Below, one piece after another: positions 10,472 to 57,731 of a stretch of 64,000 bases of DNA (the first letter of the stretch is position 1; each line of letters begins with the position of its first letter). Position numbers and translations under genes: made by a program. The stretch is taken from contig JAANOX010000045.1 in NCBI GenBank assembly GCA_020184695.1, forward strand, positions 72,684-136,683. Direction: 5' to 3'. The DNA comes from Histomonas meleagridis 2922-C6/04-290x. Its lineage: Eukaryota > Protista > Parabasalia. A model generated the notes under the pieces. It had not been told where the DNA came from and ran no database searches. It saw only the letters and a list, made by a program, of their open reading frames with translations.

Positions 10472-11738
10472 ATCTCAGTTCCAAAGGTAATAAAATGACA
10501 AATTGTTCGGTTTTGAAAGCGAATCTTTTCAAAAATATCGGTTCATTGAATTTTGTGAAGTACGATCGTATTTTGACAATGATTTATCTTGGTAAAATAT
10601 AAAAAATGTGTTTTTATTAAATTATTATTTTAAAATAATTTAAATTATTTCTATTTAGTCATTTGATTAGAAAGTCATAAGGACTGTGTGTGAGTAGAAA
10701 AAACATTTCTTTTTTGTTTAATTTGATCAGGGATATCCAATTGTTTTTACATCACGCTCGTGAAAGATATGATGACATAAGGTACCAAAATACCACGGAT
10801 TTTAGTGATAGATGAATGCAAAAGCCAGAATAAGAAAGAGTGGTTCTTGAAAAAGATATTCAAAAAATCTTCAAAGATGGGAAATTCGAATATTATGTTT
10901 ATTACGTCATTGGCGAATTGTTTGTTTGCGAAGAAATCTATGTTGCCTTATGTGAAAAAGGTTTTTAAAACCAATTAGTGATTCAATGTTTTCAACAAGT
11001 TATAATTTATAAATTGCATGTTGTTGCATCAAAACACTATTTTAATAAAATGTAAAACTTAAAATTTTTTGGAGTGGAAATTAAATTCATGAATTAAATA
11101 ATTTTTTTAGGAATTTTAAAGATACCATAAAAAATGTGTTCTAAATTGTATTTTTTTGAAATTATCTTTTCCTATTTTGGGTACACATGAGTTCCATTCA
11201 GAGAACAAATCTTTGCTACATTGGTTACTAATTCTGTTGTTCTTGGTTAATCGCGAGCTACTTTTGACTTAACAAATTTGTGGCTATTGCTAGTTTATTA
11301 TTACCATTTGGAATTTTGAACCAATCTCTTAAAATGCATCTCATCTATTTTGTATATCCACTATACAATTGTATGCAATAGTTACAATAGTTTTTCTTAT
11401 TTCTTTTCAAATCATAAAATAATAATTAAGAATGATAATTAAAATGACCATTTTATATTGGTGGGTTTAAGAATTTTTTTAATTTCGAATTTAATTTTGT
11501 TTATTGGCTGAATTTACAAAGCGCTTTGTGAATCTACACTGTGATATAAAAATATGCAATAGGGTTTGTAATTAGTTCAGCTAATAGTTGTATGAAGCTA
11601 TGATTTTCCAGACATCTGATTTCATATTTTAACATCCTTACTTTTACAGATTTCCTTCATTCCATTTTATCACTCGTTTTGTGATTATTTTCAGATTCTG
11701 AAAAAGTTGTAAAACGAAAAGTGGCAGGTATTTCTGAG

Positions 11739-12320
11739 ATGGATGACGAAATAACAGTAAAAGTCGTTTTTGTTGGTTCTTCAGGTGCTGGTAAAACATG
11801 CATCATATCAAAATATGTAAATGGTATATTCTTGGCTTCAAATTCATCTACAATTGGAGCAAGTTATTTTTCAAAAACTGTTCAATTTCAAGGTAAAACA
11901 TATAATATTAACATATGGGATACTGCTGGTCAAGAATTATATAAGAGCCTTGCCCCAATGTATTACCGCGGTGCAGTTGCTTCTTTTGTAGTTTACGATG
12001 CTGCAAATTACCAATCTTTTATTGAAGCAGAAAGTTGGATCAAAGAACTTCGAACAAATGCTCCTCAAACTTTGATTATTTTGTGCGCAAACAAAATTGA
12101 TCTGGTTGATGAAAGGAAAGTTAATTACGATGAAGGTTTCAAATTAGCCAGCGAACAAAAAGCAAAATATGTTGAGACCAGCGCCTTAAGTGGAGCAGGC
12201 GTAGAGCAAGCATTCGAAATTGTTTTTTCATATGTATCAGCTCAACCAAATGTTGTAAGCGAACCAGTGAAACCACTTGTTCCTGCTACAAATACCGAAG
12301 AGAAAAAGTGCGAATGCTAA
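11739..12320 (+). CDS. Rab-family small GTPase
   Basis: GSSGAGKT, WDTAGQE, YYRGA, NKID, ETSA and a C-terminal CEC (CxC prenylation). The real ATG is probably 11739 rather than the GTG at 11721. Confidence 0.93.
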   Translation: MDDEITVKVVFVGSSGAGKTCIISKYVNGIFLASNSSTIGASYFSKTVQFQGKTYNINIWDTAGQELYKSLAPMYYRGAVASFVVYDAANYQSFIEAESWIKELRTNAPQTLIILCANKIDLVDERKVNYDEGFKLASEQKAKYVETSALSGAGVEQAFEIVFSYVSAQPNVVSEPVKPLVPATNTEEKKCEC

Positions 12321-13004
12321 TATTAGAGATAAGTTCATTTGAATCTTATTTTTCAGAAACAATCACGAAATAAATAAAAAGAAAGAATCTATTTGTTTTA
12401 TTTTAAAATGTTTGTTGTGCAATTACTTTAAAAATAGAAATTATCACATCTTATTATTTTACCATTTCATCAGTTCGTCCTTTGTTTGGTTTACAAAAAT
12501 AATTTTAACAAAATATTGCATAGGATTTATCAAAAAGTCGAACTAAGCTGATTTTTCTATTGAATTAAAATTTCAAACCGTATTTCAACACAGAAACAAA
12601 TGAGGTAAATATTTTTTATGATTATATCACATTAATAATATTTCACATTATTTTAGAAATCAATAAAATATTTATATAAATTTTATATTTTTATTATTGC
12701 TCATTTATTTTTTGAAAATGAAAAAATTATAATAAACTTGTTTTAAATCAATTGAAAATTTAATATTTAAAATAATTTTGTGTTATTACAAAAAACATTT
12801 TTCAAACCTATAAAAAAGCTCGAATAAATGAAAAAATCTTTACAAATTGTAAAAGATAAAACTTTAATTTTGAATTCACCTTTATAAAATGTTTATAATG
12901 TGATGCCATCTCTTATATAAAAATTTATGTTTTTCGATTGTTAAATAAATTTTTTTGTATTTAAATATCTTCTTATTTTTTGGAGAAATCAATATTTTTA
13001 TTTG

Positions 13005-14267
13005 ATGAATCATAATCTACATATTCAACGATCTAACTTTTTTGTAGAAGAACGTGCAAACAAGCTCAACGAAGAACTTGCAAACATTGTAAAATTAGTT
13101 TCAAATTTAAAGATAGAAAACGAAACATTAAAAAGAATATATGATCTTTCTATAATTCACTTATTACAAATTCAAGATGATTTGGAAATGAACCGTCAAA
13201 TATTTAATAAAATGAGAGTAAAAGTAGATGGAGCTTCTTCACCAAGTGAAAATTTAATTCAACCAAATAATATCATTTCGAATTTAACACAAATGAATGA
13301 ATTACAAATTTCAAACATGCAATATGAAGTTGAACCAAATAATATCAATATTAAACTTAAAGCATCCATTAGAACGAATAATCTTGTTTGCTCAGTGTGC
13401 TTTCAAAATACAGGTGAAAATATTGTATTTAGTAATGGTAAAACAGTATTCATTGTATCAATTAATGATGGTAAAATGATTCAATCATTTAATATACCAA
13501 ATTCAAATAATATTCATGATTACACACCTAGATCAATAAGAGTAAGTCCTGATTCTTTATATATTGCACTTGGAGGACCAGATAATGCTATTATTATTTA
13601 TTCTATTGAGCAAAATAAGATAATAGCAAATCTTGAAGCACATCAAAAGCAAATATCTTCTTTGTTATTCTCAAATGATTCAACAATATTATACTCAAGT
13701 GGTTATGATGGAATTCTATGCGTTTGGGATTTACAACAAATGGCATTAAAACAAATGATTAAACCCCAAAAAGATTCATCAAATGAAATGATTGTTTCAC
13801 TTTCTAAAGATCCTAATGAATATTTCATTGCAACAGGACTTCTAAATGGTTCTGTTGGAATATATGAACCAACTTTTCAACAACCAATGAATAGTTTTCA
13901 AGCGCACGATTCTAACCAATGTTTACTTAATTTATCAATTTCTCCTTTTGATGGAACATTTGCAACTTCGTCGCATGATAAAACAATTAAAATATGGAAT
14001 CTTCATGGTGTTGCATCATGTAGAAGAATTCTTCAAAGTCATACAGATATAATATTAACTATTTGTTTTTCACCACTTCAATCAATTTGCTTTTCTGCTG
14101 GTAAAGATGAATCCATTAAATGTTGGGATTACAAAAAAGGGGAACTTTTATTCACCTTAAAAGGACATAGAAATACTTTATTTGAGATTGCTCATCATCC
14201 GTTTCAGAAAATATTTGCTTCATGTTCAGGCGATGGAATGGTTTGCATATGGGAATATGTTATTTGA
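13005..14267 (+). CDS. WD40-repeat protein with N-terminal coiled coil (Tup1-like architecture)
   Basis: Repeats such as AHQKQISSLLFS..SSGYDGILCVWD, SHDKTIKIWN, GKDESIKCWD and SCSGDGMVCIWE. Confidence 0.88.
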   Translation: MNHNLHIQRSNFFVEERANKLNEELANIVKLVSNLKIENETLKRIYDLSIIHLLQIQDDLEMNRQIFNKMRVKVDGASSPSENLIQPNNIISNLTQMNELQISNMQYEVEPNNINIKLKASIRTNNLVCSVCFQNTGENIVFSNGKTVFIVSINDGKMIQSFNIPNSNNIHDYTPRSIRVSPDSLYIALGGPDNAIIIYSIEQNKIIANLEAHQKQISSLLFSNDSTILYSSGYDGILCVWDLQQMALKQMIKPQKDSSNEMIVSLSKDPNEYFIATGLLNGSVGIYEPTFQQPMNSFQAHDSNQCLLNLSISPFDGTFATSSHDKTIKIWNLHGVASCRRILQSHTDIILTICFSPLQSICFSAGKDESIKCWDYKKGELLFTLKGHRNTLFEIAHHPFQKIFASCSGDGMVCIWEYVI

Positions 14268-14617
14268 ATGCAAATAATTAAAATAAACATTGTGGTTTAG
14301 TTCAAAAATTTAATTAAAAAACAAAGCTCATTTGTGATAAAAAAGAAACTTAATGCAAATATTATTTAATTTTAATATTTATAAAAGAATTTAACAATGT
14401 GTAAAATGTGTATGTGCACAAGGTCTTATTTGAAGAAAATTTTAAAATTTAACGGTCAAAAATAGGCTATTAAAAGTGACAAATAAAACATATTAAAATA
14501 AAAAATAATAAAGAAAAAACAAATAATCATATATAACCAAGATTTACTTCAAATATATTTTACATGAGTTTTTTAGGTGATTAACAAAAATCAAAAAAAT
14601 CATGATTTCAAAAAATA

Positions 14618-15316
14618 TCATGATGATGGTGAAAGATCCGAATCCATGTAAACATTACGTTTTTGTGCACTAGAGAAAGAAGAGTCAGAGAGACTGGATG
14701 TATCTGAAGAAGAAGTACTGTATTGATTAATATGATAACTACTCATTCTTGCTTTTTCTTTGTAACAACAAGCTAGTTTTATTTGTGATATGAGAACTCC
14801 TAATAATAAAATACCAACAAGAACTGAAATAGTACCGACAATGGATGGGGCAATAGAAGTGAGTAATTTGTCATCGCATGTTGTTGAATTTAATGGGCAC
14901 TGTATTTCAGTGATAGTTACATTTGTATGGCCACAACAATTTAAGAATGTTTCAAGTTTTTCTTTTGTTTCATTATAAGTTGAATCTTCCCAAATAAAAC
15001 CGATCGAATCAGCAATGTTAGGAATTTGTGAGAAGCAAATAACTGCGAAAAAGATGAAAAAGGCACCCAAAATTAAATCCAAAAATGCAAGGAATCCATT
15101 TGTAACACAACTTCTTTTGCAACCAGCAGTAATTGCAACAATGAGGGCAATACATGAAACGACTATACCAACAATAACAATATAATAAATTATTGGTATT
15201 GGTGAATCAATTTTTGCTAATATGGTAAATGTAACAAAAATTGCAAATATTACAGCTGCGAGACCATTTAAAAAAACTGAAAAGAATATGTTGCATGTAG
15301 CTTTGTTGCAACCCAT
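14618..15316 (-). CDS. Tetraspanin-family protein
   Basis: Four hydrophobic segments, CCG motif (LNCCGH) and further Cys in the large extracellular loop; Ser-rich cytosolic tail. Confidence 0.85.
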   Translation of the reverse strand: MGCNKATCNIFFSVFLNGLAAVIFAIFVTFTILAKIDSPIPIIYYIVIVGIVVSCIALIVAITAGCKRSCVTNGFLAFLDLILGAFFIFFAVICFSQIPNIADSIGFIWEDSTYNETKEKLETFLNCCGHTNVTITEIQCPLNSTTCDDKLLTSIAPSIVGTISVLVGILLLGVLISQIKLACCYKEKARMSSYHINQYSTSSSDTSSLSDSSFSSAQKRNVYMDSDLSPSS

Positions 15317-15878
15317 TTTTTTTTAATTTTTCAGCAGGTTTTTGAATGACAGGTTGTAAACATCACAAACTATAGAAAAAGTCATATTCATATGACTGTG
15401 TTTTTCCGTTAAAAACCGTCAATTTAAAACACACAATTTTAACATTCGCCGGCCGGTGTAAAAAAGTGACTTTGACTTTGCACAAAACACGAACTCCTTC
15501 GAACTGTAACGCATTACCAAATGAATTAATAGTTTAAACTACATTATCCAACAAAATGCAAAGAAAAAGCCAATATTTTTTGTCAAAACTTCAATCGATC
15601 AAGAAAAAAAAACATTTTTTTTTCAGAAATAACAAATATGATATTACACGCGGTAATTAGGCTTTCTTCAAAAAATTTTCTGGGAAATCCAATTCCAAGT
15701 TAGAGAGAAAATTAACCACTTTTTTTGCCAAAATAATTTACAACAAATTGAATGCTTTCCCTCATTAACCGCTGCCACGGATTTGAATGAATTACGCGTA
15801 ATAATATTTTCGGTTTTTCACAAGTATTGAGAAGTTTTTGAGCTCAGTGAAAAGTGGCGAAGTTGACCACAGAAATCT

Positions 15879-16742
15879 TTACTCAATCCTAAAAATACCA
15901 GCAGCATATGAAACAGATGTATCATACTTAGATCTTACGACAGATGATTGCGAGTAATGCGGCCAACTTACATTGTATTTGCTTTTGATTGTCATCATAG
16001 CAATTTTTATTGGAACTTCGCCACATATAGTATCACCAGTATCTTTTATAAATTTAGCAAAAGCATTTACATCACAAGAAGAAATTGCTTTCATTCCTTC
16101 TTTGTCTAGTCTTTCAATATTCTCATTAATAGAAACATTTCGATCAAGCAAATAAGTATAATCAAAGTCACTTCCCCAATGACAAAAGTCAGATGAAACA
16201 ACTAAAAGAGTATCTGGTTGATTCACAATTGGTGCTAAAGCTTCTGCAACATTTTGGATCGCTTCAGGAGAAATATCACCGATCATAATTGGGATAATAG
16301 AAAACTGTTTGTTCTTAAAAATGTATTTGAGTAAAGGACATTCCATCTCAAGGGAGTGTTCCTTTTCGGCAGTCGCCCTGTCCAACTTTTTGAATAAATT
16401 CCCGTTAGACGATAACAATTTTTCAATGGTATCGGTGTCAAATGGAATGTTGCCAAGTGGTGTTTCAATGCTTTTTGCATCTGCAATTGTACAATGGTTA
16501 ATATAAATGTAATGAGATGGACCAAGGATAACCACACGGTTAAACAATGATGTGTCAACAGCTTTAAATGCATGAGCTGCCGTGGATACCGAATAAACAT
16601 ATCCTGCATGTGGTGAAACAATAGCTTTTGTTGTTCCCTTCGCATTTGGGTCAACGGAGGCCTCGGAAAATGCCTTATCAAGCATGGAAATCAATTGGCG
16701 GCCGACGGGGTACCATGAGTTTTGGTGTGTTGCTCTTTGCAT
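15879..16742 (-). CDS. MEMO1: MEMO1 family protein
   Basis: SWY, SPHAGY, GPSH, EHSLEM, SSDFCHWG, TICG and SVSYAAG motifs in the expected order. Confidence 0.9.
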   Translation of the reverse strand: MQRATHQNSWYPVGRQLISMLDKAFSEASVDPNAKGTTKAIVSPHAGYVYSVSTAAHAFKAVDTSLFNRVVILGPSHYIYINHCTIADAKSIETPLGNIPFDTDTIEKLLSSNGNLFKKLDRATAEKEHSLEMECPLLKYIFKNKQFSIIPIMIGDISPEAIQNVAEALAPIVNQPDTLLVVSSDFCHWGSDFDYTYLLDRNVSINENIERLDKEGMKAISSCDVNAFAKFIKDTGDTICGEVPIKIAMMTIKSKYNVSWPHYSQSSVVRSKYDTSVSYAAGIFRIE

Positions 16743-16799
16743 TGAGCTATTTTGACTACTTTACATCGTAAATTTTACCAAAGTTTACACAAAAGTGCT

Positions 16800-18218
16800 C
16801 TAACTTTCTGTTGATGAATCAGAAGAAGAATCTGATGAGGAAATATTCTCTTTTATCTGTTCGCTGTTGCTTTCTTCGTTCTTATTTTCAACATTGATTT
16901 GAATTTTTGGTTCTTCTTCTTTTTCTTCAACTTTGATATTTTCTGATTCAATTGGATCATTAACCCTAAATTTTTGAACAGATGTTTCGAAAACTGATGC
17001 ATATTCGTCACTTGTGAATACCCTTGGCGCCTTATTTGGAATAACAGTCTTTGATCTGGGACTAATAGCTTTATTTCTTTTTTTCTTTTTCTCTTTTGTG
17101 CTTTCTGCAGGCGGCTTTAGTTTTGGCAACAGTGGATCAATGCCGAAGTTTGTATCCTTTGCGATATGTTGGAAAGACTTAGCGTACGACACATTATTGT
17201 TACTATTTGAGGACATTTTTCTTGTGTTTTTTGTGTCCTTTTGTTGTAACATTTGCCAATGCATTTCGAGAAGTTCTTTTTCTCTTTTTAACTCATTTAT
17301 TAATATTTCTTTTCGTTCTTTTATACTGTTTTCAAGAAGCAACTCTTCGTTTTTATGCTTTTGTTCAAGTTGCGTTTTCGCTTGTAAATAATCATTGTCC
17401 ATTTGGTTTTGTTGTTGTTTAGTTTCTTGTGATTGAAGCGCATTTATTTGTTGATTAACTTCTTCGGCTTTAGTATAATCGCCAGTAATAATTAAACTTC
17501 GTTCAATGTATTTAAGTTGCAGTAATTTCGTTGAGGACTTACGGTACTTCTCTGGATACTTCTCGCTCCATACGTATTGGAAATTTTCGTTTTCTTTTTC
17601 GTGTTGTCGCTTAAGTTTTTCGCGCGATTTTTCAGCCTTTTCATCAAATTCGGATATGCGGTAATTATGGTCTTCTGCTCTGTGTATTAGTGCGATTGTA
17701 AAAACAAGAATTGTATTCGATAACAATCCTTGTTAAGAAACATACTGTTCATCTTGCCGTTGTTTAGCTCTTTTGAATTGGGTTTCTTTATTGTCGTCGG
17801 TGATTTTTTGCTTCCGATTTTGCTCATTGAGTTTGACACATAGAATTAATTGATTCGTAAGTTCACATTTTTTGAATTTACGCTTGGCAGCACATGACTG
17901 AAGATATTCTCGAAGATGAGCAGAAAAAAGATGAAGCTCTTTTTCTGATAAATCAGTAAGTGCTTCATTAACTTTTTTCCGCTTTGATGACATAAGGGAT
18001 TTTCGAAGATCAACAAATTTTTTATTCTTAGATGTTGATATAAATATTGGTTTCACAGATTTTACATTTCTTGGTGATTCAGATTTAACGTTCCGTTGGG
18101 AATTTAAATTCGAATGCTGTGGGGTTTGCGATACACTTTGTGTTTGGCTCAAACTTGATTGATGAGGAAAGATGCTTCTTGCTCTTCTTTTTATTATAAT
18201 TGTTCTAGTTGTTCTCAT
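16800..18218 (-). CDS. Two-exon coiled-coil hypothetical protein, join(16800..17679,17746..18218), about 450 aa
   Basis: ORFs 17733..18236 and 16800..17726 join in frame (..DEQ|AEDHNYR..) after removing a 66-nt intron. ATG at 18218 follows a TCATT Inr-like motif. Confidence 0.8.
17680..17745 (-). other. Spliceosomal intron, 66 nt
   Basis: 5' GTATGT and 3' ACTAATACACAG, a one-base variant of the trichomonad fused branch/3' site ACTAACACACAG; removal restores the reading frame. Confidence 0.85.
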
Positions 18219-19446
18219 CAATGAACATTTTTTCACAGTGTATGTTAAAAAATTGACCTACATGAAGGTGTTTCTAATGATTATAGCTAAAAGATTCTCC
18301 ACCCACCCCAAATATTTGTGGGAATTTGAATATTTCACAAATGTAAAGTAAATCTCTTATTTGATGTTAAACCATTTATATTGAGTCAATAACCACTGGG
18401 TAAACCATTCAAGGCTATAATTTTTGAGTCGATCTTGCATCTAATCAACCAATTTTATGATCATATGCATTCACTTAGACAAAAAGTTTATATTGGATAT
18501 AAGTATCGTTCTCAAAGTTGATAACGAATGTTCCAAACAGTACCTTATAAAAGTGAAACTTTGCTTTCTTTAAGCATCTCAGAAATTGATTTTGTTGACA
18601 TTCTTCAGTATGTTGCAATTGCCATTGGTTCTTCAACGTCAATTAAATCTTGATTTTGGATAGAAGGTCGTTCAAGCTGCTTATTATTCACATCTCGTAT
18701 TAGATCCCTAGAGTACCCATTAATTCTATGTATTTTACTATTATTTTTATTTTGACCTATCAGTTCTATTCTGCCACATCACCTTTTTTTTCATTGTATG
18801 TGACATTTGAGGTTTGTTATTCATCATACAATTAAAAGTAAACGGAACTTTTGGAGAAGTCTCACAATGCCGATCGATTTCTTCATAAATTGGTAACAAA
18901 TCTTTTTTGACATAGCTGTATGTTAGGTTTGTGTATGATCCTAGCATGATGAAGATAAGTAAATACCTCACATAATACATTTCATAAACAGAACTCAACA
19001 CTTTCCACTCGAAATTCTAAAAATATGTTAAACAAGCATTTAAAAAAAATTACAGAATTGAGATAGGGTCCTATTCTCTAAACGGTCGTTCGACACCAAA
19101 TATAATAGAATAATCTCGTTATCTCATTATATCAAATTTTAAAAGATATATGATAAAGATTAATAATAACAGCAAATAATATTCTTATGTTATTATAAGA
19201 CGAAAACTACTCAATGATTTCAACTTCCAAACTAACGTAAATTGCTTTAGGTATCAGCATATTAATGGCGAATCGCGAATTAATTCAAATTCGCGACACT
19301 TAACTTATCAAAAAGTGACATTCAATCTACATGTCAAAATTAATATGTTGCTAATTATTCCCAGGCCGTTTACTTTTTTTCATATGAAAAAACATCAGCA
19401 AAAGCGATTTATTATACTGCAAAATATTCAACAAGGATATTCAAAT

Positions 19447-20230
19447 ATGGAAATGAAAAGAAAAACAAGAATAAATATTAAAACAGTTGCAAAGATCATA
19501 ATGATGATTGACAATGGTGAAAATATTTGTATAAATTTAGTAAAAATTGGGGCACCAACAAAGCAAACACCAGATTTAGTCGAATATATCAAAACAATGA
19601 CCGGAAAAAACAGTAGAATGTCAAATGAAGAATTGGCCAATATATGCAATTCATCAAATTAATTTCTCAATATTCCAAAATCAACGGTTCAGACATTCAG
19701 AAAAAAATTAGGATTCAAGTTAATACCACCTATTCGTACATTTTATCTTACTGAAGAAAAAAAAATTGCAAGAGTCTTTTTTTGTCGCAAACACCTATTA
19801 GAAAAAAAAAATGGGATAATATGCTTTTTACGGATGAATCCTATTTATGGCTTGGAGATGATGAATTGATAGATGGATCCGGTCTTATTCCAGACATGAA
19901 CCAGCCTATGGAGTAGGAAAATGAATTTTAATGCAGGACGGAGCCACGGCTCACACATCCAAAATAACTATTGATCATATGAAAAATTATGTAAATATTA
20001 TAGAGAATTGGCCGTCGATGTCGCCTGACCTCAACCCTATTGAGAATCTATGGTATATCATTAAGGCGAGAGGATATGAATTAAATCCGCAAACAAAATA
20101 GGAACTAATTGAATATACCTTTGCTGTATGGAGTTCAATTTCTTAAGAAGTTATAAATCACCTTATTGACTCCATGGAAGAGCGTATGAAGGAAGTAATA
20201 AGGAATTTTGGTGGGCCAACAAGCTTCTGA
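19447..20230 (+). mobile_element. Decayed Tc1-like (DDE) transposase with stops, frameshifts and an internal deletion
   Basis: Fragments: STVQTFRKKLGF, FTDES (D1), MQDGATAHTS (D2), NWPSMSPDLNPIENLW (E), ending GGPTSF*. Confidence 0.85.
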
Positions 20231-20705
20231 ATTTTCTGAATAAAAGTGAAACTTCTTTGACCAAATTTTATTCCCAAATGTAAAATATATCCAATTTAAA
20301 ACGATCGTAATTAAGTCAATTATTTTTGAATTATTTCTATCGTATGGGAATAATATTTGGCAACACTTTAGCTATCAATTCATTACAATATTATAAGAAT
20401 AGAGCATTACAAAAAATTATAGTATTACCCAACAATTCAGTGATTGATTATGCATCCTTTTTCTGATTTCTTTCAAATGATTATTTTTGTGAAATCGAAA
20501 AATCACAAAAAAGTGATTTTTCATATCGAATTAATTTATATTATCACAATACTTCAGTATTCCATTTATTTGTTAATAATGATTTTTCCTTACGCATTAT
20601 GTTTTTGGATGAAAAATATTATGAATATAGTTGGACACAAAAAAACAACTTTGTTAAGTTTAATATTAAACTTCCCAGAAAATAAAGTTTTTGAAATTAA
20701 AAAAT

Positions 20706-21389
20706 TACATAACATCCAACAACCTTTGGAAATTTGAATACTATATATTCAAAAAGTGGAGGCCCGTTTCAATCATAATAAAGAATTCGAATTAGGTGTA
20801 ATTTGCATTCAAAAATTGGCTTTCAATTTGTTTTCTGATGAAAATATTTTCGTTCAAGCTCATTTTGGATAATTTACAATTTTCGCTATGTTTTTTTTGA
20901 ATAAAAATAGTATTTGGCAAAAATGGTGTAAAATTTAAATGTTGTAATATTTCATATTCTGCATTTTGATTCTTCTTGTTATATGTTAATTCTCACTTAT
21001 ATGTGCTTATTCTCACCTATATGTGTTTCTTTTCATTATTTTATGTACCAACATTCGCTCAAATCATTCAAATATAATTTGACAAATATATAATTTGAAC
21101 GACTTTCATTTGATATAGATAATATATAGTGAACATGGGGTATAGTTAAAAATGAATTCAAACTTATTCTAATTTCAGAAATGGAGCTCATATGATTAAT
21201 TATATTCAAAGAGTTTACAAATCAATGTTTACATGCCTATTGAATTGAATAATTTTCCAGAAAACGAATTGGGAGCCGATTTTTGAATGCAAATTACAAA
21301 TTATTCAAATTCTTTATTAGGATAGAATGAAGTCTTCACTTTTTGAATACTGCCCATTCAAATTCCCCACGGTTGTAGGATAGTACCTA
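20706..21389. mobile_element. Non-autonomous TIR element (MITE-like), about 680 bp with ~140-bp imperfect terminal inverted repeats
   Basis: 20706-20845 is the approximate reverse complement of 21250-21389; both share tttgaat..tattcaaaaagtg..taataaagaatt.gaat..tgtaatttgcattcaaaaat.ggct. The right end is GGATAGTACC followed by TA. Confidence 0.8.
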
Positions 21390-21906
21390 AACGTCCTATA
21401 ATAACGGTCACTTGAAGAGTAAAATTTAACCTGACCCCCACCCCTAGTACACTTTATACTGATCACCTGTCTACGCCGAATTATAAAAAAAGTGCTCCGC
21501 GGAGTCGGGCTTCGGCAGGTTTGTGATAAATGCACTCATTCGCCATTAGGGCTCTCTTTGGGGGAGGGGGTACATTGGTCAAAAGAAAAAGAAAAAAAGA
21601 AAAAAATAGATTGCCCATTGAGTGAACAAACTTTGTTATTATCACTAATGTGCTGAGTCGAAAAGAATAAAAATTTAATCAGAAAAACCGAAAAAAAAAT
21701 TGAAAATATCTTAAAAATCGATTGAATGGTTTACTCAGATTGATGGTAAATTAAATATATAATTAGAATTAGGAACATATAATGTACTTGTTGTCGCAAC
21801 TATAAAATTAGTTCCGGATATATAAAATGGTACTAAAACTGGTAGGAATATTTTCGAAATAGCACAAAGATCATATAAAACTGATGGATATCAAAAAAAA
21901 AAAAAA

Positions 21907-22498
<592 letters not shown>

Positions 22499-22719
22499 AA
22501 GTTCAAAAAATGTTAAAATATTTAATGAATCACAATCGGAATAAATTTGAAGAACTATGGCCAGTAGAAGCTCACAATCAAAAAAGAAAATTAGAAGAAT
22601 ATAAAATTAGACAATTCATGAAGATTAGTCAGGAGATTCGAAGAGAAAAAATTATTGGATATGGGCCAGGAGCCATGGAAATAGAGACGAAATTCATTCC
22701 AAAAACGTTAAAAAATAAT

Positions 22720-22747
22720 GGGGGGGGGGGGTGGGGGGTTGGGAGGG
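22720..22747 (+). other. G-tract cluster G12-T-G6-TT-G3-A-G3 (potential G-quadruplex)
   Basis: Matches four G3+ runs with short loops, in otherwise very AT-rich DNA. Confidence 0.55.
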
Positions 22748-23731
22748 ATACAACAGGTTTTCCCTGGTTCTGATTCTGAAGCAATAAGAAAAAAATTCAA
22801 TAAGGTACATATCACTAGTCAAAATGACATGTTTCTTCAAACAAGGCTTGATAAAAGCATTTTAACTCAATAAAGTGTCTCCTTAGATTGTATTTAATAT
22901 ATCAGCCACTTTTTGAGATTCCACTTTATCAATGTAGTCATAAGAATTACGATAGGGAACAGTTAACAACTAAAATGCATTTGATAAAAAATAAAGTATC
23001 CAATTTCTTTTTTTTCATTATGGTTGGGGAAATGTTTATGGAACAAAGTGTTCTAATGTAATTCTATTAACATTACAAATTGAATTTAATTCTATCGCTA
23101 AACCAGTAAATATATTATAACCATAAACTTTGATATCGTCTATTGGGATACCAATATATAAATTTATAATAATTATCTACAACATATTCATCTACATCAT
23201 ATAATTCTGAATATTGTCGGACTTATTATTTATCATATTCAACATTAGTATCAGCATTTATTTCTCCTATCAATATTTCGGGATTAAAATTTTTGGAATT
23301 TATTTGTGTTAACATATTATAATATAATAATAATTCCATATATTTATTATTATAAAAACCTAGTTTTATAGGTTGTATAAAAATGAATATCAATTATCAT
23401 CTAGTGCATTACAGCTACCTATTTAGGGAAATTATACAAATTTAGATATTGAAAAATATGAAATTAATTCAGATAATGTTAATAGATATAATTGATATAC
23501 CTTTGGATATCCACAACGTTGGTTAGACTCACTCATCCGTAATAAAGCTATTGGAATTATAAAACAATATAATTATATATATATTATAAATATATAATTA
23601 AAATAATATATCAAGTCAAATTCATTAGTATTATATGTATTATTTGAAAATCGAGTTTCTGAAAAAATAATTAATGATTTTTTCATTGATGTATTCAAAT
23701 GTTTTTGCCCTTGGTGATATAGGTGAATTAA

Positions 23732-24600
23732 TCAAGCAATTTTCTTCGATACTCTGTTTGAGTTCATTTTCATTACCACTGTATGTGGATCATTTGAGGT
23801 ATAAATTTTTAAATCAGAACGATAAAAAGCATGTCGATTGTTCTCTGAAGTCGTTGCACTCAAAATAGCTAAGAGAACACGAGCAATTCGATCGACTGGG
23901 GTACCATTTTCATATTTTGAAGTTGTAGAACGAATTTCATTTTCAAAGACGCCGAATGTTACTAAATCGAGTGGTTGGAATAGATGCGAATGTGGAGGAA
24001 TAGCTACAAATCGTTCGTTGTTCTGAGTCAATTTTTTAATCATTTCATTATCGGATTGCTATGCACAATTGTCACAAATAAGAACAGTTGGTTTGTCCCT
24101 GAATTTTTCATCATTTCTCAAATTTCGAATGTAAACAAGAAAAAAATCATTAATATTATCTGAAATGATTTCCATCGAGGCATAAGCAGATTCTTGATAA
24201 CGTATGATAATATTCTCTTCAATGCGAATTCCTGATCGCAAAATTTCATTATTAAGAGTCTTTCTTGAGGTTATCATTAATGGTATTAATACATCACCAG
24301 CCATATAACTAGTAGTAATTAATAAGATTTTTTTTTCTGCTTCATCTGCACAATATTCAATTCTGGCATTTTTCGATAATGAAGGGATAACCACCTTTTT
24401 CGTTTTTCTATTGGCCAATTCCTGTTGACCAATCTCATCAAGATTAAAAATCAATTCTGTCGGCAAACCGCTCACATATTTTTCTGAATTTGAAATATGT
24501 TTTGAACAAGAACTCCTCGATAAATTTATTCGATCTTTTTCCTGTGAATAAGGCTTGGTCTTAACAATTTTATTTTGATGTCTTTTAATAAAATTACGAT
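23732..24600 (-). mobile_element. Decayed pogo/Tigger-like DDE transposase
   Basis: ELIFNLDEIG (D1), LICDNCA (D2) and PPHSHLFQPLDLVTFG (QPLD motif) across broken frames. Confidence 0.85.
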
Positions 24601-25118
24601 ATGAGTATAGAGAAACAGCAATATTAAATAGTTAAATAATATAATTACGAATTATAATCGTTCTTCACATACATTAGCTTAAAGGGTTGGGTTTTTATTT
24701 AAACTTTCACTATTTTATTAATTGCACGACAAAAATTTCCCCTATCGACTTCAAAAATTGAAGCAATTTTGCTCTCAGTCGTTGTAATAACATTATAATC
24801 TTTGATTATGATATATATTGCGATTACTTGCTTCATTCTAGATTTCGCATTTATCTGCATCCGATAATCACGTAATATGTATCTGACATCAGAATTGAAA
24901 AATTTTGTCGATAAAACATGTACTTACTGAGTTTCAGTGAATGAGGGCTTTTCTTTGAGGCTCATTTGGCGAAAAATAAAAAAAAAAATGGAAAAATTGC
25001 CATCTGAACGTATTTTGGTGTAAACAAAAGTGATGTATAATCTAATTCTCAGAAAACTTTTTAATAATAATATTGTGTAACAATTTTTTTTATGAACCAG
25101 TGGTCCATGAGCTACCAC

Positions 25119-35809: not shown

Positions 35810-36986
35810 CTTATCGTGAATAAATGAATAAATTTTGATCGTCTATTGTAATCCCCTCTAATATAAGTTTTTATTTTTTACACTTTTTTTTAGTATTATT
35901 AATTCATCTTAAAAAAAAATAATCTACACTATTTAGCTTTGATCCTAAAAAATCGTCTTCTCAGTATAATTATCGTTTTTCAACTCAATAGTTGCAGGAA
36001 AAATATAGATTTTTCATATGAAAATATTTTTCATACATATAGTACAAGCTTATAAACCTATTTTGGCACCTTTTTCACAAAGAAATTTTTTTATTTCTTT
36101 GAAACCCAGCTTTTTAGCAATTTCAATAGCTGTTTCAAATTATTAAAACATATTCCATTTTGTTAAAACATGTGTAAATTTTTTCAAATGAATATTTTTT
36201 GAATTAACATCAATTCCTTTATCTAAGAGTAACTTTTAATTTAAATAAAACAAAATACCTGAATGAATTATCGTTTTTTACTTATTCAAAAGTATTTTCA
36301 CCATTTATATATATATAATATAATAAACACATTGAAATATATATAAAATTAAAAAAACGATGATCTATAGATGATGTCTTAATCGAAAATAAAATAAATT
36401 TTATATGAAAAAATGAGTGTAAAAATGTTAAAAATATAAAAGAAAATATCATAAACATTCGGTTCGCGCTTATTGGATAGTTTGATAAATGGGCATCGGC
36501 AAGCATCTGCATATAATAGAAACATAGTGTTTGGATAAACCGAGAGAATATTGATCTAAATTTACGGTACAAATTAATATGATTTATATATTAGCCATAT
36601 TATTAAAACAAGAGAAAATGTGAATCAATTGATTGAAAGTGGATTTTGTTCTAAAGCCTTCACCTATTAGTATTTCTGTAGCAAATTAAATGGGAACATT
36701 TATAATATATTTATAATTATTTTCTATTATATATTATAATTATTAGAAAACATGTTCTCAATGAATTTTTTTTTAGATTCACATTTTTTATTACTTTTTC
36801 ATACAATTGTAACCGTTTGAACTCAGAATTATTTTGAATGAACGGCCGTTAGTCAAAAAAGTAGGGGTTTTTCACTAAAATAACCGTATGAAAATAGACT
36901 TTTTATATGTATTTTAATCGTCAACCCCTCTGAAATAACTGCCAACACAAAATTGAATGTAAAGCTAAATAAAAAACGATGTTACA

Positions 36987-37271
36987 CTATTTTATTCGAA
37001 TCCGAATGATTTCAATGAGCTCACTCGGGAAATTATTATTGTTCAGAACAGCGACAAGGCGGTGGGGCATTGAATCAATGAGCTTGCGAATTCCAAGTTG
37101 GGAAAGATTTTCCCAAACATGAAATGCAATATTGATTAAATCTTCTTCAGTTTGCGGCCCCAAGTCTTCAATCCTTCTCTTCACTATAGACCACAGGTTC
37201 TCAATAACGTTAAGGTCCGGGCTCATTGCAGGCCAATTTTGAACTCGATTGCAATATGTAGAACATGACAA
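36987..37271 (-). mobile_element. C-terminal fragment of a Tc1-like transposase
   Basis: NWPAMSPDLNVIENLWSIVKRR..KLIDSMPHRLVAV. Confidence 0.85.
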
Positions 37272-37529
37272 TTCATAAAGATTTATATGCGAAGCAATTG
37301 ATATTATTGATCGATTTATATAATATTAATTAAGTCAAAAATGAATTTTAATGGAACATTGATATAAAATTTGTGTTGTATTACAGAGACGATTAAATAT
37401 TTCACAATATCCTAATGCTTGATCGTAGTTTAGTTTAATATATGATAATTGTTTTCTTTGATTCATTCTAATTAATTCAATGTATAATGTATGCAATGTC
37501 GATAACTTGCTATTTAATAATATCTGTTT

Positions 37530-37750
37530 CATCATCTTTGCCAAATTTTATTTTTGTTCAAAAAACTTGGCGAAAATCGTAAATTATTCAAAATGAAATT
37601 GAATTAAAATATTTTATCAGAAAACAAATTGAGAGCCATTTTTTGAATGCAAATTACACCTTATTCAAATTCCCCATAATGATTGAATTAGGCCTTTACT
37701 TTATGAATACTACTCATTTAAATTTCCCACGGTTGTAGGATAGTACCTTA
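37530..37750 (-). mobile_element. 5' terminus (TIR plus subterminal region) of the same family as 20706-21389
   Basis: 37610-37748 matches 21250-21389, including cccacggttgtaggatagtacc. The reverse complement of 37530-37640 continues to match 20818-20930. Confidence 0.8.
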
Positions 37751-39191
37751 CACTCATCTCCAAAAATCCGTAACTTTTTTTTACATTTGAAAGAAATTCA
37801 ATGGTTAATTTTTACGGATTTTTGGTTAACGTACAATAATCAAAAAGTAGAAATAATTTATTGAATTACAAAATTTAATGCAAAATGTTTGGGTGCTGTA
37901 TTAGTGGGCTAATATTCTGCATCGGGTGTTGTATCGAGAACTTGTAACGACTTTCAATATCTGGGGGCGTCCGATTGACGAAAAATTTCGATATTTTGAT
38001 AAAATCGTCTTCAAATTGTGAATGATATATCATTATCATATGGTCTTCAAAAAACGTCCAAGGGTTATCTGCACTCGAATAAGTTTGGTATTTTCTGAGA
38101 TTAGTATCGATTGGTAATTTATGACTGACAACTAGAAATTGTATTGTTTTATCATTATTGTCTAAACATGCAAGGATTCTCGCCCTAAATGAAAGAACAA
38201 GTTTGTTGATAGTACTCATAGGAATTTAAATCTCAGCATTGAACAAGATATTGTATAACTTCATCTATATTTTTTGGGTTGTGCGCATTAACAAAATGTT
38301 TTAATATACCCCACAGGTTTTCTTTTGGGGAGAGATCACAACTATTTGGTGGCCAATTATTTAACCAAACGCACATCGCATTGAGAAAATCTTTCGTATA
38401 ATAAGAGGTATGAGATGATGCTCCATCTTGTTGCCATATTTATTGAAGTTGGCCAAAAATGTGATCAAGTGTGGGAAATACTGAATGAGTTTTTAAAATT
38501 TCAACATACTTTTTTGAATCTTCGGTTTAATTAATAAAAATTAAATCGCTTTTATAATTGACCCCAATAGCTGCAAATACCATAACTCCTTTTGGAAATT
38601 TTTCTTTTAATGCTATAATCTGATCTGAGGTTTCACCGTTTTTCCGCCAAACCCATTTCCCGTCTGACCTTAAACAAAACCGCGATTCGTCGGAAAAAAT
38701 TATTTTGTCGTATTGGAAATTAAGGTCATTTGATATATTTGTTGAAAAATTTATGTGTTTTGATATTTGTTGTTAACTTAAATTTTGAAACACTTTACAA
38801 GGTTTCCAGTTATACTTAAGTTTGTGCCTTGCTCTATTTATTTAAGTCGGAGATAAAGGTAAAAAAATGATAATGATCTATCACTAATCGTCGGATCAGC
38901 AGACGTAAAAGCATCAACTTGTTGCATCATTGAATCTGTAAGCTTTGTTGGCCTTCCTCTTTGTGCTGGAGTAGGACATTCTTTATTTTGTTTATAGTAA
39001 TTTAAAGTTTTATAAATTCTTTATTATTATTTCTACAATGACAAACATGTAAAATAAATTTTATTGTGTTCTCTTTGTTTTTAAGGTTTAAAATGTTCCA
39101 TTCTTTGGATTTCGATGGGTCATATCCTTCGTATTACATCTAAATGACTTTTGAATTGCTATTTGGTCTTACGAATTTTTGGAAACAAGTT
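37751..39191 (-). mobile_element. Tc1-like DD34E element (~1.44 kb, TA-flanked, 23-bp imperfect TIRs) whose decayed transposase ends in a Myb-like repeat
   Basis: TIRs CACTCATCTCCAAAAATCCGTAA (37751-37773) and TTACGAATTTTTGGAAACAAGTT (39169-39191). Transposase motifs RGRPTKL, IIFSDESRF and WQQDGASSHT, with 34 residues to E in NWPPNSCDLSPKENLWG, followed by WTFFEDHMIM..FIKISKFFVNRTPPDIESRYK. Confidence 0.85.
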
Positions 39192-39367
39192 TATTTTTTT
39201 CTTAGCCGATTAAAGCTATGATTTCTGTTCTCGTTTTGATCATATTTTGAGTCATTTGACAACCTGTGTCTTGCATGAACAATAAAAATGATGAATCAAA
39301 CAAACATTGTCAATATCTCGGGCTGGGCTTTGTTTGACAAATTTTCATTTGAGAATTTTTAATTTTA

Positions 39368-42300
39368 ATGCTTATTTTGTTTATTCTTCATGCATCTCAA
39401 ATTTTCATAGAAGAAAACAACACGCTAGTTGTCAATGCAGCTGATATTTCACAAGGGACATACAAACAATATCAAGACAAAACAGAATTTATTAATTTTG
39501 TGGATGATGTCAATCTATTTGAGAATTCAGCATTTAGAAATTGGCCTGCGTTAATTTCTGTTATAATTTCAAATTCAGTCGTTACCATTTCAGATTTCTC
39601 CTTTTATTCATGTAACGAGTTATCAATGATTACACTTTCAAATTCTGTAAAATCCATAGGTATTTCAACATTTCAAAAATGTACTTCTCTATTAAATATC
39701 ACAATTCCAAATTCTGTAACATCTATTGGTTCTTCAGCATTTCGAGAATGTACTTCTCTATCAATTGTAACGATTCCAAGTTCAGTGACATCTATTGGTT
39801 CTTCAGCATTTCGAGGATGTAATATTAATATTACATTTTACCAAATTCAACAACAAAAATTGAGAATGAATTGTTTTATTCTTGTCCATTGACCTCAATT
39901 ACCATGAGTGATAATGTTGAGACAATTGGAGATTATGCATTTTTTGGTGTTGTTATTGACACAGAAAATTTCAAATTTCCAAAATCATTAAAATCAATTG
40001 GATTTTTTTCTTTTGGCTATTGTAATCATTTCTATTCACTTATATTTAATGATGGAATGAAGACAATTGGTGATTCATCATTTAATTCATGTTATAACTT
40101 AAAAACAGTAGTAATTTCAAACACTGTTACAGAGATTGGATCTTATTCATTTTATGATTGTCATTCATTAGAATCTTTAACCATTGGGGAAAATGTTGAA
40201 ACCATTTGTGAAGAAGCATTTACAAATTCTAATTTAACTGAAGTCATAATACCCAAATCAGTTAAATTAATCGAAAACAATGCATTTTCTTGTTATAGTC
40301 TTGAAAACATTAAAGTTTCAAATGAAAATAAATTTTATCCGAATCATCAAAATGATGGAATTCTTTATAATAAAGAAATAACTCAAATCGGATATTATCC
40401 AAAACGAAATAAAAAAGAAACTTATGAATTTCCTAATACAGTTACTTCAATTGGTAATTTTTCATTTTCTAAATATCCTTTTAATAAAATTATAATTCCG
40501 AATTTTGTAACTTATATTGGTTATTATGCATTCGGTAGTAACCCTAATTTAACAGAAGTTATTATAGGAGAAAATGTTAAAATAATTGAAAATTTTGCAT
40601 TTTCTGGTTGCAGATTATTATCTAAAATTAGAATTCCTAATTTAGTTACCACAATTAATGAATATACATTTAGTGGTAATTCTAATTTAACAGAAGTTAT
40701 TTTTGGAGAAAATGTTAATATAATTAAAGAATCTGCATTTTCTTTTTGTGATTCATTAACTAATATTACAATTCCTAATTCAGTTACTGTAATTAATGAT
40801 TTTGCGTTTTCTTTTTGTAGTTCATTAGTTAATGTTAACATTCCTGAATCAGTTACTTTAATTGGTGAATCAGTATTTAATAATTGTTTAAAACTTCAAT
40901 TTATCAATGTATCAAAAGGGAACAAATTTTATTCTAATTATGATAATGATGGAATTCTTTATAACAAAAACATTACACAAATTCTTTATTATCCAATTTC
41001 GAACACAAAAGAAAAATTTGAAGTTCCAAATTCTATAATTAATATTAATGATTATTTATTTTATCAATGCACAAATTTGAAAGTGATTATTATTGGTGAG
41101 AATGTTAAAACAATTGGAAATCATGCTTTTAGTTATTGTACTTCATTAACAAATATTCAAATTCCTCATTCAGTAACATCAATTGGTCAATCATTATTTT
41201 TGCATTGTATCAAATTAGAAACAATTATTTAAAGTGAAAACATTGATAAAATAGACAAAAATACATTTAATTATTGTATCTCATTAACGAAAATCGAAAT
41301 CTCAAATTTAGTAACGTCAATTGGTATTTCAGCATTTTCATATTGTTATAATTTAGAAACAATTATTATGAATGATAACATTAACCAAATTGATGATTTT
41401 GCATTTTATAATTGTATTTCATTAAGAAACATTAACATTCCTGAATCAGTTACTTTAATTGGTGAATCAGTATTTAATAATTGTTTAAAACTTCAATTTA
41501 TCAATGTATCAAAAGAGAACAAATTTTATTCTAATTATGATAATGATGGAATTCTTTATAACAAAAACATTACACAAATTCTTTATTATCCAATTTCGAA
41601 CACAAAAGAAAAATTTGAAGTTCCAAATTCTATAATTTCAATTAAATCTTTTTCTAATTCTTCGTATTTAACAACAATTATATTAAATAATAATGTGCGA
41701 ATAATTAATGATTATACATTTCGTAATTGTCGTTCTCTAAAAGATATTGTTATTCCGAATTCAGTTATAACAATGGGAAAAAATTCATTTCAATATTGTG
41801 CAAAATTAGAATCAATTAAACTCAGCGAAAGTTTAACACGAATTAATGAATTTTCCTTTGATTCATGCGAATCATTAAGAAATATTATAATTCCTGAATC
41901 AGTTTCTCTAATATTTCCTTATGCATTTAGTTACTGTACTCAACTTGAAACTATTTCTATTCCAAAAGGTGTAATTCGTATTTATGATTATTCATTTTTA
42001 CGGTGTTCAAATATTAAATATATAAATGTATCTCAAAATAATAATAAATTTTCTAATTATCAAAATGATGGAATTCTTTATAATAAAGATATTACAAAAT
42101 TATTGTTATATACAACAGGATCTGAAAATAATGCATTTATTACACCTGAAACGGTTCAAATCATTGGAGAATTTGCGTTTTATTCATCTCAAAGTCTTTT
42201 CACTTTAACATTGGGCGAAAATATAAAAACAATTAAAAGTTCTGCATTTCGTAATTGCATTAATATGAAATGTGTATATTTTCATGGTGTTAATGAACCT

Positions 42301-56050: not shown

Positions 56051-57731
56051 ATGTTATGTTTTATAATATTTATTTCTCTATTTTCTTATTCACAACAAAG
56101 TTTTGATGAAGAAAAAAGAACTTTAACTATATCAAATTCATCCGAATTTTCGGATAATTATAAGGCCAATGCAAGTCATGTTATTATTGCAAATGGAATA
56201 ACAGTTATTCCAGAAAAATCTTTTTATAGATGGGAATCATTAATTACTGCTGTGATTGCTGATTCAGTTACTTCTATTGGAATGAATGCTTTTTATTTGT
56301 GCCGTAAATTAAAAAAAGTTTCATTTGGAAAAGGTATTACTGATATTGGTGGGTATGCATTTAGTGCATGCATTTTATTGAAAAATGTTACACTAACAAG
56401 TAATATTAAAACAGTTGGATATAATGTTTTTTTTTGAATGTAGTGGCCTTGAAATAGCAATTCTCAATGAAGGCGTGGAAATGATTGGCTCTAACATGTT
56501 TAAAAGTTGTTATAATCTTAAATACGTAACAATTCCAAGCACTGTAAACACAATTACAGAAAGTGCATTTACAAAATGCATAAGCCTTCAGTTCATTAAA
56601 GTTTCTAAAGATAATTTAAATTATTCTAATTATGAAAATGATGGTGTACTATATAATAAAGAAATTACAACACTTATTAGTTTTCTCCCAGGGAATATTT
56701 CCAATTATTATAAAATTCCTGATACAGTAACCAAAATAGAAAATAATGGATTTAACTCTTGTGATAATTTATCATCAATATCCCTTAGTTCTTCTCTACA
56801 AACGATAGGTCAAAGTGCATTTGAATCATGTATATTTACAAGTCTAGTAATTCCAGATACAGTAACATATATCGGACCTTCTGCTTTTTGTTATTGTGGG
56901 AAACTAAAATGGCTTACTATTGGAAAAAATGTGAACACAATTTTAAATAGTGCATTTTCATTTTGTGAATCACTTAAATGTATTATTTTTAATGGTGAAC
57001 TTTCACCAGATTTTGGATCATATTGTTTTAATCTGGTTAATAATATAACAACTGTTTTTGTTCCTGCTACATATCAAAATGAAACATTTGGTGACTTTAA
57101 TGTAACAAAGGGAACAATAACTGATGAATGTCTCCCTCCAACACAAACATTTACAAAATCAAATACATTTACGAAATCAAATTCATTCTCTAAATCAAAT
57201 ACATTTACTAAATCAAATTCATTTACTAAATCAAATTCATTTACATTATTATTATCTAACATTACATTATCACATACTTTTGTATTAACATATATTTTAT
57301 CATTTTCAAAATCAATGACACTGAGTGCTTCATATATAAATTCATATAGCATCGCTCATATTAATTCATCACTTACATATATACCAACTTTATTTATATT
57401 TTATGAATATACAGTTATTATTTATACTACATATTTCACTTATTATTCCAATTTTTATGTTGTTTTTAAAAATAATGAAATAATACCTGAAGATCAAACA
57501 TATATTTACATTATTATTGGTGTTTTGTTAGCTGTTATTATTGTTATCTCATTACTTATTGTTTTATTAATACATATTCGAAACAAGAAACAAAAAAGTG
57601 AAGAAGGGTCAAAAGAAATTAGTGAAAAAGAAGTAGAAACAAATAAATTTTCGATAAGCTTTTTACCAAAGAGTATGGAAGAAGATCCATTTGCAAAAGA
57701 TTTTAATGAAGATCATTTTGTTAACATATGA
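56051..57731 (+). pseudogene. BspA-like LRR surface protein with Ser/Thr stalk, TM and DPF-type tail; +1 frameshift in a T9 run
   Basis: Signal-like MLCFIIFISLFSYS at 56051, TpLRR units, T9 at 56427-56435 joining the two ORFs, TM YIYIIIGVLLAVIIVISLLIVLLI and tail EEDPFAKDFNEDHF. Confidence 0.85.
57147..57245 (+). repeat. 18-bp coding repeat (T/S)F(T/S)KSN, about 5 units
   Basis: TFTKSNTFTKSNSFSKSNTFTKSNSFTKSNSFT in the translation. Confidence 0.9.

Follow-up and report, generated by a model that had tools for sequence, protein, structure and literature searches.

The window analysed here is a stretch of 64,000 nucleotides from Histomonas meleagridis 2922-C6/04-290x (GenBank assembly GCA_020184695.1, contig JAANOX010000045.1, positions 72,684 to 136,683 of the forward strand), with a GC content of 29.0%. 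On the minus strand, positions 37751-39191 of the window hold a cut-and-paste transposon of the Tc1-like DD34E type. The copy is full-length but dead, and the remains of its transposase are followed by a Myb/SANT repeat before the element ends. Taken as a whole, these data are very probably best explained by descent from a transposon family, here called the Tc1-Myb family, whose transposase combines a helix-turn-helix (HTH) region, a DDE catalytic core, a linker and a Myb repeat, with the Myb repeat probably acting as an accessory DNA-binding module.

The element is flanked by TA dinucleotides at 37749-37750, where its 3' end lies next to a putative target-site duplication, and at 39192-39193, at its 5' end. 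Inside these flanks lie the terminal inverted repeats (TIRs), at 37751-37773 and 39169-39191 on the minus strand. Counted with the flanking dinucleotides (37749-37773 and 39169-39193), they form a pair of 25 nt that is 80% complementary, and both begin with TA. Each TIR contains one copy of a 14-nt inner motif, CCAAAAATYCGTAA, found as CCAAAAATCCGTAA at 37760-37773 in the 3' TIR and at 39169-39182 in the 5' TIR. A third, subterminal copy on the minus strand (37812-37825) is oriented like the 5' TIR. It is found downstream of the stop codon, 38 nt inside the motif of the 3' TIR, with which it forms an inverted pair of 14 nt at 100% identity. Three copies of this motif were found in the 64-kb window, against 0.21 expected by chance.

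Between the TIRs, the transposase gene is preserved as seven minus-strand pieces. When the translations of all three minus-strand frames were mapped onto a profile of full-length relatives, these pieces proved colinear with positions 7 to 408 of this family profile. The remnants of an N-terminal paired-like HTH (38776-39112) comprise three pieces in two frames: 39026-39112, which matches profile positions 7-35 weakly, 38868-39020 (positions 36-86, E-value 8e-11) and 38776-38841 (positions 102-123, E 6e-5). The Pfam domain HTH_32 was matched in this region with an E-value of 0.1. The catalytic core follows in another three pieces. Its N-terminal part (38530-38772; positions 125-203 matched by 38772-38533, E 3e-32) contains the first catalytic aspartate in the motif FSDESRF and matches the Pfam domain DDE_3 weakly. 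The middle piece (38443-38526; positions 208-233 matched by 38520-38443, E 2e-4) is enclosed by in-frame stops, and the C-terminal part (38236-38439; positions 235-301 matched by 38439-38239, E 2e-26) contains the second aspartate and the glutamate, with a DDE_3 match at E 8e-6. The spacing between these last two residues is 34 (QQD...SPKE). Both DDE_3 matches, at 26.2 and 13.1 bits, remained below the cut-off of 28.6 bits.

Three-frame translation places a break at 38226-38235, directly after the core, where a TGA stop is accompanied by a frame change of 1 nt. Beyond it lies a piece of open reading frame (ORF) of 116 amino acids (37878-38225; positions 306-408 matched by 38225-37911, E 2.5e-17), which ends at the stop codon at 37875-37877. 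This piece encodes the last helix of the transposase (TINKLVLSFRARILACL), a linker of about 30 residues, a decayed Myb/SANT repeat of the R3 type (37914-38066) and the tail SPLIQHPNILH. In total, the copy carries at least four in-frame stops (38773-38775, 38527-38529, 38440-38442 and 38233-38235) and three frame changes (near 39020-39026, 38841-38868 and 38226-38232), and it is therefore dead and unable to make the protein. A BLAST search of the window detected no second copy of the Tc1-Myb family. The 34-residue spacing, the 25-nt TIRs and the TA on both sides bear out a first-pass annotation of the window, made from the letters alone, which had described a Tc1-like DD34E element between matching, TA-flanked TIRs.

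The same annotation had proposed that the Myb repeat belongs to the transposase, and the relatives of the 116-residue piece agree with this. A word-index protein search retrieved none, and exact-sequence look-ups of the window ORFs gave no match in the protein collection. In an exhaustive phmmer search against 1.84 billion representative proteins, however, P0007, P0015, P0018 and P0025 aligned across the whole piece, and in each of these proteins the core, the C-terminal helix, the linker and the Myb repeat are all part of one ORF. The relatives share the motifs DGA.CH…WPPNSPDL.PIE..W in the core and INKLV.SF..R…CL in the helix, followed by the linker, a Myb repeat of the pattern WT.EED…G.KW…N(R/K)T…IKNR(W/Y) and a tail with PL…PPI, the counterpart of which is SPLIQHPNI in the window copy. 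A profile search extended the set to 688 relatives at an E-value of 1e-5 or better. Precomputed Pfam annotations contained Myb and DDE_3 together in 67 of 120 relatives, among the matches listed, and dozens of relatives of 400-480 amino acids carry HTH, DDE_3 and Myb in one ORF. One of the relatives is annotated as 'transposable element tc3 transposase [Histomonas meleagridis]'. The top phmmer matches P0001 and P0003 were rejected as relatives, as these are spurious repetitive proteins (a bacterial immunoglobulin-repeat protein and DUF1759), and P0002 was rejected as a fusion, as it is a plain multi-Myb protein.

Among 49 full-length members, a Pfam scan detected DDE_3 in all 49, Myb_DNA-binding in 41 and Myb_DNA-bind_6 in 33. 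Several of the remaining members gave sub-threshold Myb matches, and the best score for PF00249 within the family was 53 bits. The N-terminal region was recognized as HTH_Tnp_Tc3_2 (29/49), HTH_32 (16/49) or HTH_23 (13/49), and the family profile also matched the paired domains of PAX proteins. The catalytic residues D147, D235 and E270 (numbering of P0039) are invariant in the alignment of the 49 sequences, giving a DD34E triad. The family profile matched the catalytic domain of Sleeping Beauty (5cr4) with an E-value of 1.5e-48 over positions 116-332, and Mos1 with 1e-11, while positions 354-403 matched c-Myb (E 1.3e-24) and Myb2 of Trichomonas vaginalis (E 4e-20). In most members, 135-200 residues follow the catalytic glutamate. 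An AlphaFold2 model of the full-length P0039 had a predicted local distance difference test score (pLDDT) of 86, with the Myb repeat at approximately residues 355-403. It is preceded by a low-confidence stretch at 341-350, which we read as a flexible tether between the catalytic domain and the Myb repeat.

These comparisons show that the fusion of transposase and Myb is a trait of the family: other members do have the extension, the absence of which would have counted against the first-pass annotation. They also bear on a more trivial explanation, in which the Myb-like ORF would be part of a host Myb gene, or open by chance, and merely adjoin a Tc1 pseudogene, or would have been captured by a single copy. 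The region is a patchwork of repeats in which the end of another element abuts the TIR at 37748, the Myb ORF and the catalytic core are in different frames, and the word-index search returned nothing, all of which would fit such an accident. However, many relatives with no more than 30-55% identity have the same order of helix, linker, Myb repeat and tail behind the DDE core in one ORF, the Myb repeats of these relatives lie inside their own TIRs, and Myb and core diverge together. Since the fusion recurs in the relatives found by phmmer and by the profile search, we rejected a local accident, the probability of which we consider negligible.

The clusters of two structure resources showed canonical Tc1 architecture only. 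None of the large clusters of the ESM Atlas combined DDE_3 and Myb; the clusters found were canonical Tc1 clusters, all scoring below 0.9. Similarly, the best matches among the cluster representatives of the AlphaFold DB were canonical Tc1 transposases that covered residues 1 to approximately 328 and ended before the Myb repeat.

The identity of the repeat in the window copy was assessed by profile and by structure. It matched Myb_DNA-bind_6 (PF13921) with 23.5 bits, above the cut-off of 22.9 (E 6e-5), and Myb_DNA-binding (PF00249) with 20.9 bits, below the cut-off of 24.4 (E 4e-4). Its aromatic residues are spaced W-18-F-18-Y, as in an R3 repeat of Myb, the middle tryptophan having changed to phenylalanine; in the 49-sequence alignment, the three aromatic columns hold tryptophan in 73%, 82% and 59% of members. 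AlphaFold2, run on the 116-residue piece with an alignment of 64 relatives, gave a mean pLDDT of 84 and values of 94-97 for the Myb part, with three predicted helices at residues 58-71, 75-79 and 87-99. A Foldseek search of this model against the PDB returned a list dominated by Myb/SANT structures and led by Myb2 of T. vaginalis (3osf, 3osg), c-Myb and Myb3 of T. vaginalis (3zqc); 1guu was also matched. The model superposed on c-Myb R1 with a template modelling score of 0.86 and a root-mean-square deviation of 1.5 A. The E-values of these matches were weak (0.03 or higher), which is usual for so short a domain (50 residues), but the matches were uniform. The above-threshold Pfam match and the three-helix fold thus uphold the assignment of the segment to the Myb/SANT repeats that had been made from the sequence alone.

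Whether such a repeat reads DNA or binds protein is a separate question. A SANT-type module could bind histones or partner proteins and so anchor the transposase on chromatin or on a factor of the host. Neither Pfam nor Foldseek separated Myb from SANT, and the structural matches included the SANT domains of CoREST, DMAP1 and NCoR/HDAC3; moreover, the core motif bound by Myb proteins is not enriched in the ends of the elements, and only a single repeat is present. Against this, the Myb repeats of the family are basic, with a median isoelectric point (pI) of 9.9 and 84% above pI 8, and they have kept the K-N-R-W of an R3-type helix 3, which has decayed to E-S-R-Y in the window copy. In R3-type repeats of c-Myb, these residues contact the bases. 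In addition, the best sequence matches of the family profile were DNA-binding R3 repeats of Myb proteins and not SANT domains. On the basis of the basic pI and the conserved helix 3, the Myb domains of the family are predicted to be of the DNA-reading type rather than of the acidic SANT type, and we regard a protein-binding SANT module as improbable.

The loci of the relatives show how the Myb repeat is carried. L002, L010 and L011 have perfect, TA-initiated TIRs of 27, 26 and 28 nt, respectively, that enclose the Myb-coding part, the latter two at contig ends. In L009, TIRs of 24 nt (88%) enclose an intact ORF of 452 amino acids, and in L005, which is located in the same H. meleagridis assembly (GCA_020184695.1), HTH, DDE and Myb are encoded in one frame with a single stop between TIRs of 44 nt (82%). 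The Myb repeat therefore travels with the element, being encoded inside the TIRs and, in intact relatives, in the same ORF as the transposase. The position of the repeat inside the TIRs, first noticed in the window, was found again in these five loci, and the relatives supplied what the window copy does not have, namely DDE_3 and Myb in a single ORF between TIRs. In the core, the identity between the L005 element and the window copy is only about 40%, so very divergent Tc1-Myb lineages coexist. The L005 locus and the window also share dispersed non-coding repeats at 82-90% identity.

A copy of the inner motif of the TIR (14-16 nt) was found just past the stop codon in 5 of the 7 family members examined. 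In these members, the third copy is oriented like the 5' TIR, at a distance of 39-115 nt inward from the 3' TIR, creating a small inverted pair at the 3' end. Besides the copy in the window, at 37812-37825 and paired with 37760-37773, these are located at 3807-3823 in L010, 1348-1365 in L011, 1369-1394 in L004 and 1325-1340 in the L005 element, whereas no such copy was found in L002 and L009 at three or fewer mismatches. Several members thus differ from the Tc1 family in having a third, inverted copy of the binding motif near the 3' end. The arrangement also differs from that of Tc1 elements of the inverted repeat-direct repeat type, as those have direct inner and outer repeats, while the 3' end of the Tc1-Myb elements has an inverted pair.

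The other relatives are located on eukaryote-like metagenome contigs with a GC content of 32% to 47%, and one of them neighbours an acetyl-CoA hydrolase of eukaryotic type. On the contig of L011, two pogo-like DDE_1 transposase genes (1812-3844) lie beside the intact Tc1-Myb element.

A fusion of this kind could also be a domesticated host gene, a transcription factor derived from a transposon that is no longer mobile. Myb factors are numerous in trichomonads, in which the family is said to be greatly expanded. Furthermore, when contigs from sequencing runs were aligned to 36900-39900 of the window, contigs of two runs labelled RNA (X1 and X2) matched 37752-39900 at 99.6% identity with a depth of 130, compared to about 4 in the left flank; depth in a library labelled RNA is, however, no proof of transcription. 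The window copy is a pseudogene enclosed by TIRs, relatives with perfect TIRs exist, the contigs of L010 and L011 break at the TIR ends as those of multi-copy repeats do, and the catalytic triad is invariant throughout the family. A domesticated gene is therefore very unlikely as an explanation. To the left of the element end (37751), the X1 and X2 contigs continue for at least 600 nt in a sequence that is richer in GC, unrelated and absent from the window. This may be due to a structural variant, to a second locus or to chimerism of the contigs.

The first-pass annotation had also described the Myb repeat as continuing in frame from the transposase. This was correct for the last helix (TINKLVLSF...), which shares the ORF at 37878-38225 with the Myb repeat, but the stop and the 1-nt frame change cut that ORF from the catalytic core. 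The separation of the two frames in the window raised the possibility of programmed ribosomal frameshifting, by which the element would make a short transposase and a longer transposase-Myb isoform. However, intact relatives, including P0039, P0040, P0119 and P0018, read through in one frame, and the junction in the window has, besides the frame change, a TGA where the relatives have tryptophan. The frame breaks of L002 and of the window copy are also at different places.

A near-identical version of the element provides further evidence on this point. Contigs of a DNA run with the same organism label (X5) contain a version, either an allele or a paralogue, that is about 97% identical to the window, in which TGG (tryptophan) replaces TGA at 38233-38235 and one base fewer is present at 38227, placing core and Myb in a single frame. 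With intact relatives reading through and neither the stop nor the extra base in this version, we consider programmed frameshifting hardly credible. At two residues, the same version is closer to the family consensus, with G for E in FG and I for K in PIE. As it has tryptophan at the stop site, no frame change and two residues nearer to the consensus, the lesions at the junction of core and Myb are, judged by this comparison, specific to the window copy. The X5 version retains the stop at 38527-38529, so it is dead as well. Decay in the window copy extends to the Myb repeat itself, where FGxxW of the family has become FEDDF and IKNRW/Y has become IESRY, with KN of the recognition helix replaced by ES.

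One X5 contig joins position 36961 to 39337 with 9 other letters in between. The 2,375 bp skipped comprise a canonical Tc1 remnant, the end of another repeat and the whole Tc1-Myb element, and the junction is not a precise empty site; it may represent a variant haplotype or a paralogous locus.

Conservation across the family was compared domain by domain. In the 49 full-length proteins, the mean pairwise column identity was 0.42 for the core, 0.27 for the HTH, 0.25 for the Myb repeat, 0.18 for the linker and 0.12 for the tail; the Myb repeat is thus about as well conserved as the HTH, and better than linker or tail. Pairwise identities of Myb and core were correlated (Mantel r 0.65, a value reached in none of 2000 permutations), as were those of HTH and core (r 0.82). 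This co-divergence of Myb and core, seen over dozens of lineages, points to a single acquisition, after which the Myb repeat would have been inherited together with the transposase and maintained by selection. Inserted copies decay neutrally, yet the Myb repeat is conserved, and such conservation can only come from selection on transposition. We conclude that the Myb repeat is probably needed for the spread of the element or strongly aids it.

From these data, an intact transposase of the family is composed of four parts. A paired-like, bipartite HTH, which would bind the TIRs, is followed by an RNase-H-like DDE core, a flexible linker of about 25-35 residues past the canonical end of Tc1 transposases (...GG.S/T..), and one basic R3-type Myb repeat with a short tail. 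The Myb repeat would then form a third, tethered module that reads DNA sequence.

Several observations weigh against a DNA-binding accessory module in this form. In R2R3 proteins, one R3-type repeat alone has only a weak affinity for DNA. P0136, P0138 and P0146 have a different C-terminal tail and no detectable Myb repeat, so the domain is not strictly indispensable. In six elements, the non-coding ends showed no enrichment of the Myb core AACNG, with 13 occurrences observed against 9 expected, most of which were the terminal AACTG. Finally, most relatives are on metagenome contigs, which give only a poor picture of the host range.

The role of the Myb repeat can be suggested only tentatively; the first-pass annotation had put forward targeting of insertion, autoregulation or the seeding of Myb genes. 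It may tether the transposase or the excised complex to particular genomic DNA, such as Myb-type sites in promoters, and thereby bias the choice of target; this is a real possibility, if still short of probable. With somewhat more doubt, it might help in end recognition or synapsis, by analogy with the separate Myb-like protein of Harbinger elements. The AACNG counts, as far as they go, leave such an end-binding role unsupported, and as no separate conserved Myb-type site was found in the ends of the elements, tethering to genomic or target DNA is slightly favoured over it. Other roles, such as autoregulation, nuclear import or chromatin binding, seem less likely. The third copy of the inner motif near the 3' end is more likely a binding site of the HTH domains than of the Myb repeat.

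In its basic design, the element resembles Tc1, Tc3 and Sleeping Beauty, with TA flanks, short TIRs with an inner binding motif, an N-terminal paired-like HTH and a DD34E core. Canonical Tc1 transposases are 330-360 amino acids long and end approximately 60-70 residues after the catalytic glutamate, whereas most Tc1-Myb proteins continue for 135-200 residues past it to a full length of 400-480 amino acids, the extra part being the linker and the Myb repeat. This length sets the family apart, although it does not belong to the catalytic features by which Tc1 elements are defined. The termini differ as well, reading AACTG or TACTG instead of the CAGT of the Tc1 family. The Myb repeat shares with the R2R3 Myb factors (c-Myb R3, Myb2 and Myb3 of T. 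vaginalis) the three-helix fold, the aromatic spacing of 18 residues, G.(K/R)W and (R)T...(I/L)KNRW in helix 3. Unlike these factors, it consists of one repeat, which is attached to a transposase and lacks the context of a transcription factor.

PIF/Harbinger elements are likewise cut-and-paste DNA transposons that encode a Myb/SANT-type domain inside their TIRs, and in Harbinger3_DR the Myb-like protein is required for nuclear import of the transposase (PMC3158080). There, however, a separate Myb-like ORF accompanies a transposase of another superfamily, while here a single ORF carries the Myb repeat at the C-terminus of a Tc1-type core; going by the sequences, the relation is one of analogy and not of membership. 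In SETMAR and in laboratory constructs that link Sleeping Beauty to DNA-binding domains, too, an additional functional domain accompanies a transposase of the Tc1/mariner type. SETMAR is a host gene that arose by domestication and has its SET domain at the N-terminus, and the engineered fusions are artificial, whereas the Tc1-Myb fusion is natural, C-terminal and present on mobile elements. Engineered fusions of transposases to DNA-binding domains serve to bias integration sites.

No account of a Myb domain on a Tc1/mariner transposase was found in full-text literature searches, and to our knowledge none of the named Tc1/mariner families has one. A C-terminal Myb repeat on a Tc1-type transposase appears to be previously undescribed. 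The genome paper of H. meleagridis, which reports a genomic GC content of 28.7%, names transposases and Myb proteins in distinct annotations only (PMC8529796).

Tc1/mariner transposases, on which gene-transfer tools such as Sleeping Beauty are built, are regarded as minimal enzymes, with a paired-like DNA-binding domain and a DDE core. That a large natural clade appears to keep an extra C-terminal module under selection suggests that a tethered DNA-binding module is not only compatible with the Tc1 scaffold but also of benefit to it, and the Tc1-Myb family offers a natural system in which to study how such a module alters end recognition or the choice of target. It also links a mobile element to a domain family that is said to be greatly expanded in trichomonads, and parabasalid proteins annotated as 'tc3 transposase' or 'Myb-like protein' may be members of one transposon family. 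One could go further and see in these elements a natural counterpart of transposases engineered with DNA-binding domains, in which the Myb repeat would steer integration to Myb-recognition sites, for instance in promoters, of parabasalid genomes, and decayed or domesticated copies would have given Myb repeats or Myb-site DNA to the very large Myb networks of these protists; we consider this unlikely, although it is not far-fetched.

The surroundings of the element in the window contain further repeats. Two canonical Tc1 remnants, at approximately 19300-20230 on the plus strand and at 36987-37295 on the minus strand, end soon after the last helix (...GGPTSF stop and ...VLNNNNFPSELIEIIRIRIK stop, respectively) without a Myb repeat, in agreement with the earlier remark that the other Tc1 C-termini in the window, at 20230 and 36987, lack the extension. 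Their cores share 33-44% identity with that of the Tc1-Myb copy. Another repeat, of high copy number and with long inverted ends, is present as a complete copy of about 680 bp at 20707-21388 (ends at 20707-20931 and 21252-21388), and a solo end of this repeat at 37527-37748 abuts the TIR of the Tc1-Myb element. The depth of the DNA run at this repeat was 8,000-25,000, compared to a baseline of approximately 500-900. Directly to the right of the element lie ORFs encoding BspA-like leucine-rich repeats (39368-41232 and beyond), with internal repeats that extend to about 42100 and occur again at 56567-56678.

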